Shown in pieces: positions 2,750 through 48,407 of a DNA stretch of 64,000 bases; positions within the stretch are counted from its first letter, which is position 1, and each line of letters starts with the position of its first letter. A program made the position numbers and the translations under genes. Below the pieces are notes generated by a model, which saw only the letters and a list, made by a program, of their open reading frames with translations, had not been told where the DNA came from and ran no database searches. This DNA is from Pelomyxa schiedti (Eukaryota > Protista > Evosea): assembly GCA_020536535.1 (NCBI GenBank), contig JAHLWZ010000424.1, positions 73,340 to 137,339 of the forward strand. Reading direction: 5' to 3'.

Positions 2750-4511
<1,762 letters not shown>

Positions 4512-4550: not shown

Positions 4551-4997
4551 AAAAGGGGAAACTCGCCCTTTGATCTTACCGTTTCATGTTTCCCAACAGC
4601 CCTGAGAACCAACTCCCACCGGTTGGGCCGAATCGTGCTAAACGCCCCAAGCACGATACTGAGCCCATTTGTCCCACACACCATCAGTCGAAACTGGCGT
4701 GCTTTGTGAACCTTCACGTTATGTCACAGTTGGTCAGGGATATCGTGACACTTGTGCGTCTTGTTATATCCCTCAAGAGCTGTGAGAGGGATCCTGGGGA
4801 GGATATCTACCAAGCCACAGTAGATGTTACGTCACCATCACCCCAGGGACCAGGAATAACAGAACCCCCTTAAGTCCACTATCGTACGTTCTTTAGCGAG
4901 TTCACAGTCTCAAGGTCTTTGTTGGTCAGTGGTATCTTGGGACAACTTGGGCACGAGACACACAAGGTGCAACTTCATGTTTGAATCACCTGCACCA
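4551..4997 (-). ncRNA. Candidate structured non-coding RNA (~450 nt), family unassigned; strand favoured by G-U pattern
   Basis: No credible ORF. Complementary pairs: 4663-4676/4938-4952, 4705-4711/4900-4906, 4736-4743/4766-4773, 4731-4735/4848-4852, 4793-4799/4841-4847, 4632-4639/4650-4657, 4677-4683/4695-4701 (UUCG-capped on minus), 4966-4971/4991-4996. Confidence 0.5.
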
Positions 4998-15100: not shown

Positions 15101-16362
15101 CCTAATTGCAATTAACTGGGACATGGCATAAACAGGTGCCCAGGCATTGTTAACAACCTTCCCTTCGAATGCATGACGGAGAGTCATCATTTCAAAAAGT
15201 ACACAACCAGCAGCCCAAACGTCAGATTTGTAGCCATATCTATACACATGAGAAGTAACCATTTATAACAAGGGAATTTACGGCTTGCTTTTAATAATCT
15301 CAGGACTGAATAATGCATTTGAGAAGAGTTAAGCCTTGTTGGTTAGTGGAAGAGTTACCTCATATAGTATGGAGTTCCTATGACAGTTTTGGCAAATTCA
15401 CATGAGGGTTCAAGTGATCTCGATATACCGAAATCTCCTTCTTGATATGAGAAGGGAGGAAACTTGCTGAATAGCAATATGTTCATGAATCACATTTATT
15501 TACTGGTTGCATGTCATAATGAAAGAATACCCAGTTTGATCACATTGTTCTTGGTCAAAAATATATTTTGAGTTTTGATATCCCGGTGTAGTATGTGTTT
15601 ACTGTGAATATAGTCTAGAGCAAAAAGAATTTGTGTGAAATATTCCATAATGGTCTGTTTTTTTTTTTAACACAAGTATTTTCTTAATGTACAGCTAAAA
15701 CAAGGTAGAATAACCTTTTCTGATAGGTATGCACCCTTTTGTGCCACAAGATGTTTAAGCATGTCACCACGGTCACAGTATTGCATGATAACACACAGAT
15801 ATTTCCTTGGTGGATGCCCAGTGGTCATTTCAAAAGAGTGTCTGTATTCAACAATGTTGGGATGTTGCAAACTCTCAAGCATTTTCACCTAAAGCAGTTA
15901 ACGAATAAATAATCGACAATGCAAAAAAAGCCATCAAGCCCGAAACAAAGAGGTAGGGGAGAACGAATTTGCCTCTGTCAGGGCGGACTTCCTAGCCTTT
16001 TCGTTCTGCAGCCCCATTTGCTTCAGCACCCATAATCCCCTGTCGTACTTGTCCCTCACCAGGAATATCTCGCCATACGAGCCAGTCCCAATCGACCTCA
16101 CCAGCTCGTACCTCTCCATCGACGGCGGCGCCTGATGCAACCCGCCGGCTCCGCCTACGCCCCCGCCTCCCCCTCGCGTCGCCCCTTGCTGTTGTGGCCT
16201 TGCTGCTGGTGGCTCCTGTTGCTGCGAGTGGGGTGTGTTGGTGGGAGAGACGACATCCGAGACACTCCCGGGAGGGGTCGAAACCTTGCTTTGTGTCGAC
16301 GACGACGACGCGGCGTCGGTGTTGCTGCCGCCTCGATCGTCGACGTTGCTCGTGGCAGACAT
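12194..16362 (-). CDS. NEK: NEK (NIMA-related) Ser/Thr kinase with long low-complexity tail
   Basis: YELVRSIGTGSYG, VLKQM, LQHPNIVEYRHSF, MQYCDRGD, ILHRDIKTQNIFL, AKTVIGTPYYM, YKSDVWAAGCVLFEMMTLRHAFEG. The C-terminal acidic and helical exons end at TAA 12194-12196. Confidence 0.93.
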
Positions 16363-16950
16363 GGCGTCTGTTTTTTTTTTTTTGTTTCCTCCCTTCGTTT
16401 GTTTGGCGAAAAAAAGAGCACAGGGAGGCAGGTTTGGAACTGGCCCCTTTTTCTTGTGTTGACACGCCCTCAAGTTGAAAAGCAAAAATAAACAATGGTT
16501 GGGAACCTGAACTACTGAACACAGATAAGTGTGCTCTTGGCAGGTAAAAAGGGTGTCCTTTTCCCCAGCTATGTGGTATGAGGTTGATGGTTTGCCCCAC
16601 TCAGATTATACATTGCCTTCACCAAGGGACCCTCAGAAATCTAGTGATCACCTGCCTAATAACAAACCCCCATCACTGTGATCAGTGTTGTGGTTTGTGC
16701 TGTTCCCAACAACAGCCATTCCCCTAACAGATCAACCTGATTCAACCCAAAAATTCCAATCAGAACTAATGTCCTGAGGTTTGAAAGTGGGTTGAGAGAA
16801 AGAGGGAAGAAAGTATCTGCATCACAGCCTCAGGCAGTGCTATCAACATCACAGACTCAGGAAACCCCATTGACTTCTCTTGCCATCATTCTAATCCCAC
16901 TATCTACAGTCTATCTCACAAGCACCTAGAACAAGCCTTTCTACGTTCAT

Positions 16951-16958
16951 TCCCATAA
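16951..16958 (+). promoter_or_regulatory. DUSE-like snRNA-type upstream element TCCCATAA
   Basis: Matches the Dictyostelium upstream element consensus [AT]CCCA[CT]AA. Its core lies 63 nt before the predicted 5' end (17015) of the structured RNA; the same core is 61 nt upstream of U2 in this window. Confidence 0.65.
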
Positions 16959-17014
16959 TACAATGTACCAGACGAAAATTGAATTTATCTGCCCGGAGTG
17001 ATACCCAAAACTTC

Positions 17015-17481
17015 GGGTTGTGTGCATAAAAAGCACGAGCGTTACTTCAACATCTTGTTTCAATTCATTGAATGGAATCTTCCGACGACCTTTGCGAAAA
17101 ATGCGTCTTTTCGCCGATCCCAAATCCGAGGATGGGGCCACCACCATCTCCATCGATTGGGCCTCATTACCCCGTTGGGGTCTCTGGCACGATGACGGTT
17201 GTCATTGTCGCAAAGTTCTGCGACACCGGGTACTAAACTCGGCTTGCCGTGCTTCATCGGGGTAACGGGACCACCAATCCCGTTCCCATTAGGGGAGCCT
17301 GCGCCCCGGCAGGTAGTCGAGCCGCGACTCCCCAACAAACAATCCCGCCTGCTGCACGCCTGAGCAGGAGTCCTCTTCAAACAGGACCCTGCCTGGGCGA
17401 TGCCGGGAGGCACTGACTTAATGGGAATGGCTCGCTGAGCCACCAGACCACGCTTGACGCAACCACGCAACCCACTTTTTT
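17015..17481 (+). ncRNA. Unassigned ~460-nt structured ncRNA gene with terminal 5'/3' helix and 3' oligo-T
   Basis: 10-bp terminal helix 17015-17024/17464-17473; at least 11 further helices; G-U wobbles favour the + strand; T6 at 17476-17481; DUSE-like element upstream. Confidence 0.75.
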
Positions 17482-17488
17482 ATTTTTT
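17476..17488 (+). terminator. Oligo-T tract (Pol III-type terminator candidate)
   Basis: TTTTTTATTTTTT begins 2 nt after the 3' strand of the terminal helix. Confidence 0.5.
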
Positions 17489-17642
17489 CTTTGGGTTTCC
17501 ATACCGGCTGTTGTGTTGGCTTCACTGATTAGAGGCTGGGTAAGAGTATTTAATTGTCATTTATTTGTTGTAAAGTGAAAAAAAAGAGGACTTCGAAAAA
17601 TGAACAAACTGCAAAGAGTTTTTGTTTGAAATCACTCTCTTA

Positions 17643-20195
17643 TCACCGCATGATGATCCTGATGCCATGCAGTTCAGTAGGTGCCATTGGGGATTCATCA
17701 CTGGGACAGCTTACAAACATGTAGTTGCGTGGTACTTTCAGAGTAGCACTGAGCCTGTCTATCGAAGCCGGAGTGAATGGAGCCTTGACCAGCAGCACAT
17801 TGACAGTCACAGTAGGGAACATGGCATCCAGCATCGCCACTACTTCCACCAGCCGAGGCGGAATCAATTGTGGGTCAGTGTAGAAGTGCACCACAGTCAG
17901 GCTGTTTGTTGTCAGTTCGTTGTCATGGACGTACTGAACGGCCTTGCGGAGAACATCCAGTTTGTCACTCTTGGCCAGGAATATAACTTCATGGCGCTGG
18001 TGGTAAGCTTTCAGTAGAACCCGGTTGAGAACGCGACCAATTCCGCACGGTATGGATGAAAGCTTGCTGTGCAGGATAATCCTCAGTACGTTGGTGCGGT
18101 AGAGCATGAATACAACCACGGAGCAGACGCCGGCAAAGTAGAAGGTGAAGTACTTGACTATCTCAGAATCGTGAGCGATGTTTCCGGACAATCCTATGGC
18201 AATGCATATGATTCCAAGCAAAGTGATCGGCCATGGGGAATGAACCAGTCTAGGCAAGTTCCCTCTCTTGTACTTGAGTAAGAAGTTGCTGACTCCAGCA
18301 ATAATGAGCACAGTTAAAAAGGCCACAGTATATACACCACTCAGAGCGGTAACATCTCCTTTTGTTAGCAAATAGAGAGAAGAACTCAGCACAAAGAAGC
18401 AAATGATAATCCAGTGAAGCGTGTGAAAACATGAGTTAGCCTGCAAGAGGAATTGGGGCAAACAGCAGTCACGTGCCAGTCTCTCCCCAAGACCAAGTAT
18501 TCCAACATAAGCTGTGAGAACAGCACCACAGAGCACAATAACTGCATCCACTCCAACCCAAGTTGTTAGCCAGTTGGATCCCGGAGTGGCAGCGGCAAGC
18601 AACATGAGAGCGGAGGAAATATTATCTTCTGTGATGTCTGACAAAGGAACCAATGCCAATAACAAAAATTCAATGACAACGTTTTGAAAAGTCAAGATGA
18701 CCCAGATGTTACGTAGAACCTTGGGGAAACTTCCTGGAGTTTGGCTCTCAACAAAATTGGCAGCACTTTCAAAGCCAGTCACTCCTAACATGGCAGTACT
18801 GAAACCGAACCATAGGTCTTTTCCATAATGTCCAGAGATAGTCGGTGAGTTCCAATTATCAACGAGCACACCAAATCCATCAGATGCCAAGGCAGCAATA
18901 CTGAAGCCACATAATATCAGCATCACTAAGAGATGGTGAAAGAAGATTGCCATGGCAACAAATGCGCTGTCTCGTACACCAAACATGCTCAAGCATGCAA
19001 ATAGGAAAAGGAAAACGAGAGTCATCCAAAATCTCGGGCAACCACTGTATATGCCATGTAGGTAGCTTGCACCACTATCCGCACTTACTACAGCTGTTGC
19101 AACGTAACTTAGGATAATCAATACTGAGGAAATAGCGGCAGTGTGCTTGCTGGTAACATTGAGAAGGATATTGTAAACACCACCTAAGTTTATGTCAAAA
19201 GAAGGGAAGGTGAGAGAAGACGCCGCACCATTTAAAGGCAAAGCAGTGACGACTTCAGAGTAGATGTATCTATAGCAAAACAAAGGCAAGCTAACCAGAG
19301 CCAAAGCAATGGGGCTGAGCTTCCCACTCACAGAAGCACAGAGCCCGCTCGTGTACAGCACGCTACTGGCGCAGTCGTTCCCCGCAATAGCACTGGAGGC
19401 CCACTGCCCAATCTTGCCCTCCTCGCCCCCGCCGCACATCCGCCTCCTCAGCCGGTGGGCGCACTGGGGCACCCGCCCACAGCACCCGGTCCCATTTATA
19501 GCTATGGGCGACTCGTCAGCCCCAAACTCCCCCGCGCCCTCCTCCTCGTCGTCGCCGTCGCCGCCCGCGCCCCCCAGAGGAGCCATTGGGACGGCGCTGC
19601 TGAGGGGGACGCCGGCCTCGCCCTTCTTGTTGGTGTGCTTGTTTCGCTCCCTCACCAGGCCGTTCCTGCAGGTGGTGCCAAAGTCCAGGTGCTGCGCCGT
19701 CCCCCTGCTCGCCTGCTCCCACCCGTCTGGCAGCGAGAACGTGCCTCCGCCGTACGAGTAGTCCAGGTCGTCCGCCCCCGCCCCCGCCCCCGCCCCCGCG
19801 CCCACGCCGCCGTACTCCAGCCCCCCGAGCCCCTCCAGGTCCAGATCCCCGTCGCCCGCTCCAAGCACGCCGCCGCCGGCCGCCCCGGTGGGGTTGCCTA
19901 GCCCAATCACGGCAGCAGCCGCAGTCGAGGGCGTCGCAGCTGGCGCCGCCCCGGTGGCCGTGGCCAGCGCCATCACGGGCCCCGCGGTGCCTGGTGGGCC
20001 CCCGGGTGCCGCCGCGGCCGTGGTGGTTGTGGTGGTGGTCGTGGTGGTCGGGCGGGGGGGCTGGCGCCTTGTGGACTGTATGGCCTCGAGGTAGTATGTG
20101 GCCTCGGCGTGCAGCGACTGCGAGAAGACCTGCGACAGGGGCAGCTGGTTGCGCGAGGCGCGCACTATGTCGACGCTGGGCCTGCCTCTCTTCAT
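17643..20195 (-). CDS. APC-superfamily amino acid permease with GC-rich low-complexity N-terminal extension
   Basis: GQWASSAIAGND..SSVLYTSG, ALPLNG|GVYNILLN, FSTAMLGVTGFESAANFVESQ, LTAYVG; about 11-12 hydrophobic segments. Probable in-frame 45-nt intron at 19184-19228. Confidence 0.93.
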   Translation of the reverse strand: MKRGRPSVDIVRASRNQLPLSQVFSQSLHAEATYYLEAIQSTRRQPPRPTTTTTTTTTTAAAAPGGPPGTAGPVMALATATGAAPAATPSTAAAAVIGLGNPTGAAGGGVLGAGDGDLDLEGLGGLEYGGVGAGAGAGAGADDLDYSYGGGTFSLPDGWEQASRGTAQHLDFGTTCRNGLVRERNKHTNKKGEAGVPLSSAVPMAPLGGAGGDGDDEEEGAGEFGADESPIAINGTGCCGRVPQCAHRLRRRMCGGGEEGKIGQWASSAIAGNDCASSVLYTSGLCASVSGKLSPIALALVSLPLFCYRYIYSEVVTALPLNGAASSLTFPSFDINLGGVYNILLNVTSKHTAAISSVLIILSYVATAVVSADSGASYLHGIYSGCPRFWMTLVFLFLFACLSMFGVRDSAFVAMAIFFHHLLVMLILCGFSIAALASDGFGVLVDNWNSPTISGHYGKDLWFGFSTAMLGVTGFESAANFVESQTPGSFPKVLRNIWVILTFQNVVIEFLLLALVPLSDITEDNISSALMLLAAATPGSNWLTTWVGVDAVIVLCGAVLTAYVGILGLGERLARDCCLPQFLLQANSCFHTLHWIIICFFVLSSSLYLLTKGDVTALSGVYTVAFLTVLIIAGVSNFLLKYKRGNLPRLVHSPWPITLLGIICIAIGLSGNIAHDSEIVKYFTFYFAGVCSVVVFMLYRTNVLRIILHSKLSSIPCGIGRVLNRVLLKAYHQRHEVIFLAKSDKLDVLRKAVQYVHDNELTTNSLTVVHFYTDPQLIPPRLVEVVAMLDAMFPTVTVNVLLVKAPFTPASIDRLSATLKVPRNYMFVSCPSDESPMAPTELHGIRIIMR

Positions 20196-20428: not shown

Positions 20429-22204
20429 CTAGTGGCACATCGAGTTAGCTTCGTTAACGCCAGTTCCTGGACATACTTGTTTGCCAGGTTTATAACTCAA
20501 TGACAAGGCAGTTGATGCAGACCCATATGTGCCTGTTCCTGAGTTGAAGTACAGCTTGCCATCAATTTTAGATATCCATGCATGGTGCGTGTGGCCTTTC
20601 CTCAATTTAGATACTATACTTGATGTGGAAACAACCTAAAACAACACTTTGCAAGCTCGGATCAGCATTTAGGAGCTTTACGGCATATCTACGATGATAA
20701 GTGTGGAATGCATTTCCATTTCAGTGTGTACATACGGATCACAAACTTCAGAGGCTTCCATGGACGCAAAAGTTGGAAACGCTTGTCCAAGGGACACAAG
20801 CACGTGATGCTTGACTTTGTCAATTGGAGGCTCAGACGAGGCTGTCCTAACAGAACCTGGCTCCACATCCGCTTTCAAGATTTCGTGATTGTGCATTCGA
20901 ACCGTCTGAACTGGATGAACTGTAATTTAGGGATGTGAAGACACACTGCTTCAAGGTAAATATCATAGATTTCCTTCTAAAGAATTGTTAGTTGTGCGTT
21001 TTATTATTGTTAAACTGCACTTACGGCAGTCATTGTCCGAGGGCCAGAGGGATGTGGCATTTTGATAAGGATCGTACTGGGGTCTTTCCCTCGCCCAAAG
21101 TGATTTAGCATTGCAAGTGTGATTGTACCAATGATCTCTGGTAGTGTCTTACCGTGATGAATATGGTCATGCATCTCCTGCAATTCTTTAGAGCTAATCA
21201 ATGAAATTTCCAGAAAACCTGGTGGAAAGCTTGAATGTAACTATGCACTGGCGGATTCCCTTTGGAATTAATGGGCTCCTCCAAGAAGCATGAATCTACT
21301 TTACTAAACAGGTACCCAAATGGAAGCATGCCAAAGACTGTTAATTCCTTCTCTTCCGTAACAACGTGATTGAAAAAGTCGTAACTGTGACCATGTTCAA
21401 ATCTAGTGGATGAAAAGATGAAGTTCTTTCCAAGTAAGAACTTCTAAACCATCCGCGAAGGAAAATTAACCTCCTTAACAGTCACTTCTACACCCTATTT
21501 TGCTTGTCACTTATTGGGTAACCAAGAAAAAGATAAATTGCACCTCAAAGAACTGTTGTATCTCAATTGGTTTCAAAGTCATGTCATGGTTTCCCATAAT
21601 ATAGACAAACTTGACACCTTCACCCTATTGCCAGAAGAATAAAAAGTATTCGAAACTGTATGTGGCATACAGCAAGCTGCCGGATAGTTTCCTTAAATAA
21701 AGCACATGCTCCTGGAAGATCGAAGTGACCTCCAGCATTCTGCAAAAATTTCTTGGTTTGTGGTGCAATGTTGGGATCTTTTATCGCCTCAGCAGCCGTG
21801 AAGGTCTCAATATCATGAATAGATGTAAAGAGGATGTCCCCTGGCTGGAAGAAAAAAAACCTCAGATGCAAAGTCAAATGACAGAGTCAAGTTACTTGTG
21901 CCCAAACGTCAAAAATGTCACCATTCATTATCACCAGTCTATTTGCTCTGCTCCTTTACCGCAATTTGGCATGATTCCACATAAACAACAACCAAACAAA
22001 CAAACACAAGGAGGACACATGCCATGCGCACCTTGCAGATACAGACCACGCCAGTATGTATGACCTCCACACGTTGATCCTCTCAGTGGGTGTTGGATAC
22101 CAACCCTTCTTGTTCTTGAACGGGAATGCACCGAGGTGCAGGTCACTGAACACAAACACCGCCGCGTCTTGGTCGCTCTCAAGCCCGCTCCCGCTGTTAC
22201 CCAT
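20429..22204 (-). CDS. Calcineurin-like metallophosphoesterase, probably N-myristoylated; 3' end approximate
   Basis: MGNSGS start, FVFSDLHLG (DxH), GDI motif, HGKT segment and C-terminal HTHH..LYFNSG, spread over several exons. Confidence 0.75.
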
Positions 22205-48192: not shown

Positions 48193-48407
48193 GTGGGGCT
48201 GACCACACGAGGCGGCAGTGCAGTGCCTGGGCAATCAGGAGAGCGCCCAACTTGGCAGCGGAGCAAGCCCCACCACCAAGCAGACACCCCCAACGACCCC
48301 ACAAAAAATAAGTTTAATATCGATGCTACCCAATGGGCAGCTTTCAGATATTAAGCTGAAAAGAACAGATACTACACTTGATCTTAGCCAAAAGGCCGAG
48401 AAGGTAT
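48193..48407 (-). ncRNA. U2: U2 spliceosomal snRNA
   Basis: Minus strand reads ATACCTTCTCGGCCTTTTGGCTAAGATCAAGTGTAGTATCTGTTCTT (branch-pairing GTGTAGTA), Sm site ATTTTTG, SLIII with G(CTTG)C loop and SLIV loop ACTGCAC. The 3' end is approximate. Confidence 0.97.

Follow-up and report, generated by a model that had tools for sequence, protein, structure and literature searches.

What is transcribed from positions 17015-17481 on the + strand of the 64,000-nucleotide (nt) stretch of the Pelomyxa schiedti genome analyzed here (the window, whose positions serve as coordinates throughout)? The first-pass annotation of this stretch had proposed an independently transcribed stable RNA, and had left its class between a highly divergent RNase P or MRP RNA, a signal recognition particle (SRP) RNA, a telomerase RNA and something new. 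A permease encoded next to the gene is 97% identical to a protein that NCBI lists for P. schiedti, and contig JAHLWZ010000424.1 of GCA_020536535.1 carries the region at 100% identity, so that the Archamoebae supposed in that annotation are correct and the source is an anaerobic archamoeba. The gene belongs to a small multigene family of P. schiedti, with at least three variants, and produces a very abundant non-coding RNA of ~465 nt. As to its class, we lean, by somewhat better than even chances, to a stable ribonucleoprotein (RNP) RNA transcribed by RNA polymerase III (Pol III) and the first member of a new family, probably confined to Archamoebae, rather than an RNase P/MRP, SRP, telomerase or 7SK RNA in disguise. 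Our tests disfavor the four families named earlier and put the new family first, with a very divergent MRP or P RNA retaining a small share of the probability.

The RNA is very highly expressed and no transcript is detectable from its flanks. Contigs from four read runs were placed on 15600-19400: a DNA run (X1), a single-cell RNA library (X2) and two wastewater RNA runs (X5 and X6). In X2 the contig depth, which is summed assembler word depth and not a share of the library, is 14,141, 50,064, 49,578 and 11,036 in the four bins that cover 16997-17504, and 0 in the remaining 26 bins. The DNA run is even over both flanks (depth 27 and 11), with no differences in 2,770 nt; one of its contigs begins at 17007, and the contig coming from the upstream flank stops at 17036. 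X5 and X6 hold internal pieces only, 17029-17230 and 17267-17463. X2 probably comes from the study of Treitli et al. (2023; PMC10579272), because it has the study code in common with the organism's DNA run and bears the date 2023. The protocol there was a SmartSeq2 variant in which all RNAs are polyadenylated in vitro while the tailing of rRNA is blocked (PMC10579272). Such treatment would explain how a non-polyadenylated stable RNA came to be captured and to dominate in X2.

Within the gene the contigs of X1 and X2 differ from the window by eight substitutions and one insertion, and the flanks are without such differences. This confinement led us to suspect paralogues, and since the DNA depth over the gene is about equal to that of the flanks, the copies must be few. 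A second copy (copy B) lies unlinked on a different contig of the same assembly (L028:4819-5351 on JAHLWZ010000091.1, GCA_020536535.1); the 64-kb window itself contains no further copy. Copy B has every read variant except 17257 T>G, so that the gene exists, and is expressed, in three or more variants.

Aligned to window positions 16951-17481, copy B marks out the gene by its pattern of identity. Upstream of the proximal promoter element the two copies are 39% identical. The element itself is identical at 9/9 positions, and the spacer from it to the start is 67% identical, with TTTATC and AAAACTTC kept. The RNA body agrees at 445/460 positions (96.7%), the T-run is kept, and identity falls to 33% downstream. 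Similarity that runs from a promoter element to a terminator is as predicted for a gene that is transcribed on its own from an external promoter, not for a retroposed element. By this comparison the conserved unit consists of an element resembling the Dictyostelium upstream sequence element (DUSE), a TATA-like box, a block at -8 to -1, the RNA, and the T-run. The proposal of an independently transcribed stable RNA is borne out by the confinement of RNA depth to the gene and by this conservation from element to T-run. The features of the gene are as follows.

16951-16959 (+): DUSE-like proximal element TCCCATAAT, at -64 to -56.
16984-16989 (+): TATA-like box TTTATC, at -31 to -26.
17007-17014 (+): start-proximal block AAAACTTC, at -8 to -1, identical in both copies and adjoining an unalignable stretch at -22 to -9.
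17015-17481 (+): transcribed region of about 462-467 nt, its 3′ end within the T-run, delimited by depth, paralogue identity and folding z-score.
17015-17024 (+): terminal helix, 5′ strand, GGGTTGTGTG; 10 base pairs (bp) with 17464-17473, pair probability 0.96-1.0.
17036-17042 (+): second outer helix, 5′ strand; 7 bp with 17450-17456, pair probability 0.83-0.94.
17043-17166 (+): AU-richer 5′ third with small hairpins 17094-17114 and an arm 17116-17165; highly conserved.
17168-17264 (+): Domain A, a four-way junction closed by stacked stems, with hairpins 17191-17206, 17207-17224 and 17226-17242.
17265-17283 (+): hairpin with the 7-nt loop CCACCAA, in the minimum free energy (MFE) structure of both copies.
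17284-17426 (+): Domain B, an 8-bp closing helix and a three-way junction with arm 17292-17333.
17428-17442 (+): short hairpin UGGCUC-GCU-GAGCCA, located 5′ of the 3′ strands of the outer helices, in the MFE structure of both copies.
17457-17472 (+): perfect 8-nt tandem, ACGCAACC twice.
17464-17473 (+): terminal helix, 3′ strand, CACGCAACCC, partner of 17015-17024.
17476-17488 (+): Pol III-type terminator, T6, A, T6.

The proximal element owes its name to the octamer TCCCATAA at 16951-16958, which matches the DUSE consensus of Dictyostelium, [AT]CCCA[AT]AA (PMC3188802). There it is found ~60-63 nt upstream of small nuclear RNA (snRNA) and Class I RNA genes (PMC3188802; PMC7919456). A comparison is at hand within the window, where U2 snRNA is the sole Rfam match at gathering level. 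The U2 gene has its CCCATAA core at 48468-48462 (-), 61 nt ahead of the U2 +1 at 48407, and the core at 16952-16958 likewise begins 61 nt upstream of G17015, so that the match to the U2 element reported in the first-pass annotation holds to the nucleotide. Both genes also have CTTC at -4 to -1 (in U2, accttc followed by ATACC). The -30 region of the U2 gene is GC-rich, and of these two genes only the one studied here has a TATA-like box. The locus shows the Dictyostelium element with its ~60-nt distance at work in Archamoebae; conservation outside Dictyostelia had not been anticipated in the Class I RNA study (PMC7919456). The element therefore offers a practical handle for finding all small-RNA genes across Amoebozoa. 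The heptamer CCCATAA occurs at 17 sites in the window versus 6.85 expected, a number reached by 1/100 shuffles. The site at 21593 (+) has the extended form TTTCCCATAATA and an A/T-rich -25 region, and the 320 nt downstream of it are unstructured (z +1.4).

At the other end, the run of six T noted earlier after the terminal helix is at 17476-17481, separated from the helix by AC (2 nt), and a further T6 follows at 17483-17488. Copy B has T7 at this position, and similarity between the copies ends directly after it. The combination of proximal element, TATA-like box and oligo-T stop follows the logic of U6, 7SK, MRP and H1 genes, from which we infer that Pol III transcribes the gene.

The + strand folds far better than expected of its composition. 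Its MFE is -188.7 kcal/mol, versus -152.6 ± 6.3 for dinucleotide shuffles (z -5.73; here and below z-scores are relative to such shuffles, n=100 for the whole gene and n=200 for Domain A). None of 100 shuffles folds as low, which answers the shuffled control that had been put forward as a means of refutation. The minus strand of the gene gives z -3.54, and 467-nt flanks give -0.2 and +0.7. Domain A scores -5.43 (0/200 shuffles) and Domain B -4.67, the long arm of the latter reaching -4.18 by itself; the 5′ third (17043-17166) is equal in stability to its shuffles (z +0.12). Copy B assumes the same architecture on folding, with z -6.35. In these models the 3′ two-thirds and the ends of the RNA form a thermodynamically exceptional closed architecture.

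The complementarities listed in the first-pass annotation are all present where it placed them, and the outer and domain helices have pair probabilities of 0.83-1.0. The closing helices of Domain A (17168-17174/17258-17264) and Domain B (17284-17291/17419-17426) have 0.91-0.98 and 0.90-0.99, respectively, and the junction helix 17292-17296/17329-17333 has 0.63-0.89. The hairpins claimed there also recur in the MFE structure, save for 17348-17368, which gives way to a longer, irregular arm at 17347-17411; this arm belongs to Domain B, as does a 13-nt single strand, AACAAACAAUCCC. The suggested pseudoknot 17174-17180/17330-17336 is not supported: its 7 bp are complementary, but each strand already pairs within another helix, and the C of copy B at 17175 would break one pair. 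The 12 predicted hairpin loops read UUCA, AUCU, AUGCGUC, CCA, GGUU, AAGUUC, ACUAA, CCACCAA, GCCCCG, AGCCG, CUUCAAAC and GCU. The repeats of the tandem start at 17457 and 17465, and would allow an alternative register of the terminal helix, GGUUGUGU/ACGCAACC. Near the tip of the third Domain A hairpin (17231-17236) the sequence is UACUAA(A)C, close to the branch-point UACUAAC that pairs with GUAGUA of U2; such a 7-mer is expected by chance in an estimated ~3% of RNAs this long and is merely a curiosity.

How the two copies differ bears on the fold. Over the RNA they are separated by 14 change events. Nine are at unpaired positions, two turn pairs into G-U (17327 and 17360), two break closing pairs of small hairpins (17068 and 17325), and an A insertion in copy B lengthens helix 17185-17189/17245-17249 to the 6-bp CUGGCA/UGCCAG. 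Of the substitution events 8/12 are unpaired, versus 37% of positions (P=0.03). The 5′ strand of the terminal helix (17015-17024) is unchanged in copy B, and the 5′ third has five events only (17051-54, 17066/68, 17124, 17126 and 17139). These differences are supportive of the predicted fold, short of covariation proof.

Does the RNA belong to a described class? Rfam (4,227 families) was scanned up to E≤10 on 901 nt and on 481 nt, and the gene matched nothing at the gathering threshold and nothing beyond noise at E≤10, which is what the relaxed-threshold check proposed earlier came to. The only box C/D match inside the gene is snoZ6 (13.9 bits, E 3.4-6.4); for U3 and box C/D RNAs more generally, UGAUG is absent and CUGA is internal only (17360, 17413 and 17435). 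A motif search found no Sm site in the RNA. Domain A was also considered as a tRNA-like cloverleaf, and this was rejected when ARAGORN found nothing. The Class I RNAs of dictyostelids (RF01414) invite comparison because of their genes: these too have [AT]CCCA[AT]AA ~60 nt before the start and a T-run downstream, occur as multi-copy variants and are abundant, and the RNAs begin with G and have a stem that joins the 5′ and 3′ ends. The RNAs themselves are different. They are 42-65 nt long, versus ~465 nt with elaborate internal domains here, and carry beside the 5′ stem a conserved 11-nt motif of the CCUUACAGCAA type that is absent from this RNA, which moreover is from Archamoebae and not Dictyostelia. 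RF01414 is not among the Rfam matches and CUUACAG is absent.

The leading reading remains a new family. A stable Pol III-transcribed RNP RNA would account for the gene as follows. Pol III would transcribe it from the proximal element and TATA-like box to the oligo-T stop; a La or LARP7-type protein would bind the 3′ oligo-U beside the terminal helix; the RNA would serve as the stable scaffold of an RNP; and the conserved, unstructured 5′ third would contact partners through its sequence. We see about an even chance that this is an undescribed family of very abundant Pol III RNAs of ~465 nt in Archamoebae with an RNP of their own, for example as a La/LARP7 partner, as an analogue of 7SK, or as a nucleolar or cytoplasmic scaffold. 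The matter is of some consequence. Any one eukaryote has only a handful of mid-size, very abundant structured RNAs of the Pol III type (7SL, 7SK, RNase P, MRP, Y and vault), and each anchors a core machine. An additional one would mean either an unrecognized machine in anaerobic amoebae or the RNA long missing from the Entamoeba lineage, of MRP/P type or bound by LARP7 and strongly remodeled.

Several points weigh against a new family as just described. No orthologue was obtained from another species in scans of metagenome, GTDB and viral contigs and at one syntenic locus. In metagenome contigs the 18-mer CCCCAACAAACAATCCCG met 21 loci, all of them chance matches of ≤20 nt; a 22-mer query had 0 matches in GTDB genome contigs; and viral contigs gave nothing beyond three related phage contigs with only a 21-mer in common. 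The syntenic locus is that of the permease of the closest relative (64% amino acid identity) in ENA ERZ21831265, on the 456-kb contig ctg81867l (L025) of a metagenome assembly (40% GC), which is probably from a related, unsequenced archamoeba. Neither blastn nor nhmmer found an RNA homologue within 10 kb on each side of it, and the locus has no suitable DUSE. Between the two copies of P. schiedti none of the 146 predicted pairs has changed on both sides, so there is no compensatory covariation, and their high identity could in part reflect gene conversion rather than selection. The read-run contigs are directionless, so that the strand and exact ends are deduced from promoter, terminator and z-scores; Pol III transcription and La/LARP7 binding are likewise deduced. 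Finally, the P1-like terminal helix, its P2-like neighbor and the eP19-like hairpin at 17428-17442 resemble P/MRP RNAs. In Entamoeba no MRP RNA had been found (PMC1796607), and as P and MRP RNAs of protists can diverge strongly, absence from Rfam is no proof of a new family.

The last points are the core of the case for an extremely divergent RNase MRP (or nuclear RNase P) RNA of Archamoebae, its catalytic pseudoknot unrecognizable in sequence and both the 5′ third and Domain A enlarged by insertions; this is the main rival, which we consider unlikely. P and MRP RNAs are abundant, multi-domain and several hundred nt long, and their genes are of the Pol III type with an external promoter and T-run, which the proximal element, TATA-like box, T-run, size and abundance seen here resemble. 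Their ends pair in a terminal helix that is followed by a second helix, with a short hairpin before the 3′ strands; here the two helices are of 10 and 7 bp (probability 0.83-1.0), but this feature is not family-specific. Plant MRP RNA genes are multi-copy. The helix UACCCCG/CGGGGUA, moreover, resembles the P4 consensus of MRP, AGuCCCC/GGGGCU. It is the sole CCCC/GGGG helix (17168-17174/17258-17264), but it is nested and not pseudoknotted, and 185 nt of other structure follow it. Under the definition used in MRP searches (a P4 pseudoknot of 5′ gaaAGuCCCC and 3′ acnnnanGGGGCUnannnu, covariation allowed; PMC1796607), the best match in the RNA has 3 deviations, and 53/100 dinucleotide shuffles reach 3 or better. 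Three P4 candidates picked by eye were dropped, the pattern test being no better than shuffles: GGUCU(CU)GG/CCAGACC, the loop UGCGUC (17102-17107) with GACGCA (17456-17461), and UACCCCG/CGGGGUA. By our estimate chance alone would give an RNA of 467 nt ~27 perfect complements of 6 bp. The exact motifs GAAAG.CCCC and GGGGCU and a pattern like that of conserved region (CR) I (G.AA..UC.G-type) are absent from the RNA, and the Rfam scan at E≤10, including that on the 481 nt, matched neither RNase_MRP (RF00030) nor RNaseP_nuc (RF00009). No GARAR or GNRA loop, and so no P8 loop of the GARAR kind, is found among the 12 hairpin loops, although some known MRP RNAs also are without GARAR (PMC1796607). 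The P2-like and P1-like 3′ strands are 7 nt apart, too little for CR-V and a P4 strand. CR-IV (AnAGUnA, with A1, G2 and A7 conserved) lies 0-3 nt before the 3′ strand of P2; here CCAGACC (17443-17449) precedes the P2-like strand and agrees in the AG, whereas the conserved A at the 3′ end is lacking. No CR-I, CR-V or P4 signature is present above chance. The 120-nt 5′ region, unstructured here, is a further difference from MRP and P RNAs. An unusual SRP (7SL) RNA is barely credible. Among Pol III RNAs of middle size, 7SL usually is the most abundant, and its genes often come in several copies. The closing helix of Domain B bears two arms, much as helix 5 bears helices 6 and 8, and the 7-mer GAGCAGG is common to this RNA and human SRP helix 8. 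Yet Rfam at E≤10 gave no SRP family, none of the arms is capped by a GNRA-type or GNAR tetraloop, and AGCA at 17363 is wholly Watson-Crick paired in the MFE structure rather than placed in the symmetric loop of helix 8. The first-pass annotation, too, had found by eye no convincing SRP helix-8 motif, nor a P4 or a CCCTAA template.

The RNA could also be the partner of an amoebozoan LARP7, either as a 7SK-like elongation regulator or, less likely, as a telomerase RNA of the Pol III type; we regard this as quite unlikely. 7SK is abundant and its 5′ end closes onto its 3′ region. To our knowledge, no RNA partner of LARP7 has been described in Amoebozoa. The proteins do occur there (PMC7928011), and a gene of the Pol III type with a 3′ oligo-U tail beside a terminal helix is what such a partner could look like. 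The likeness to 7SK and other type-3 Pol III RNAs covers the proximal element, TATA-like box and oligo-T stop, abundance, the apparent pairing of the 5′ end with the 3′ region, and a 3′ U-tail seemingly suited to La or LARP7. What sets 7SK apart is a GAUC/GAUC hairpin, which is lacking here: GAUC occurs once only (17116), with no paired motif, and the 7SK families RF00100 and RF01052 are not among the Rfam matches. 7SK is, in addition, known from animals only. In ciliates and plants, telomerase RNAs of the Pol III type are similar in their snRNA-type promoter, T-run, closing helix, single-stranded 5′ region and three-way junction, and the junction of Domain B, with its 4-bp/5-nt hairpin, is reminiscent of P6.1 in CR4/5 of telomerase, but that hairpin is short of one pair in copy B. 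Telomerase families are not among the Rfam matches; no permutation of CCCUAA is in the RNA; no telomeric array is in the window; and no single-stranded stretch holds a recognizable 1.5-repeat template. Expressed copies differ in the single-stranded 5′ region at 17051-54, which argues against a template there since a template would not tolerate it, and at least three expressed variants and extreme abundance are atypical of telomerase RNA. These observations speak against a telomerase RNA without being decisive. A template within the tandem of ACGCAACC was considered and rejected, as the tandem is engaged in the terminal helix and the window has no array to match it. That leaves readings in which the RNA is no structured + strand RNA at all: a short mRNA for a 54-amino-acid peptide, a mobile element akin to short interspersed elements, or a minus-strand transcript. 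Together these are very improbable. The sole ATG open reading frame (ORF), 17072-17236, stays open in both copies, but all four changes in it are nonsynonymous (N>T, P>A, P>L and V>A), from which it follows that it is without protein-level selection and the RNA is not coding. As a query the 54-residue product finds one database protein, 'hypothetical protein Pelo_1122 [Pelomyxa schiedti]', and no other homologue. This 73-residue entry is a spliced, frame-switching gene model that joins two frames over copy B (L028:5001-5286), and is almost certainly a mis-annotation in the current P. schiedti annotation. The element is multi-copy as a mobile element would be, but the copies have in common an external promoter from -64 and lose similarity at the T-run, not expected of a retroposed copy, and the DNA depth at flank level means few of them. 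The minus strand also folds better than its shuffles and the contigs are directionless, but promoter, terminator and the stronger z-score all indicate the + strand; a 136-amino-acid minus-strand ORF used as a query brought up no relatives, an exhaustive HMMER search returning one low-complexity match (P0122). The probability beyond the readings named is assigned to none of them.

Some observations concern the neighborhood. At 4551-4997 (+) is a structured RNA-like element whose folding is marginally better than that of shuffles (z -2.0, 2/100) and that has no similarity to the RNA at 17015-17481. A CCCATAA at 4435 lies inside an apparent minus-strand coding sequence (the N-terminus of KAE1). 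Closer to the gene and upstream of it, DNA depth in X1 over 16489-16742 is 49-70, versus ~27 in the vicinity, and several contig breaks and loose ends occur there; this pattern suggests a short dispersed repeat. The segment 16816-16955 on the minus strand also looks repeated in the genome, from loose ends of X1 contigs at 16816, 16887 and 16919. It has four weak, overlapping box C/D matches (snoR113 at E 0.33, snoPyro_CD, sR2 and sR12) and the order C (AUGAUGG), D′ (CUGA), C′ (GUGAUGU), D (CUGA). Judged by these boxes, it may be a C/D small nucleolar RNA gene just upstream of the promoter and antisense to it.

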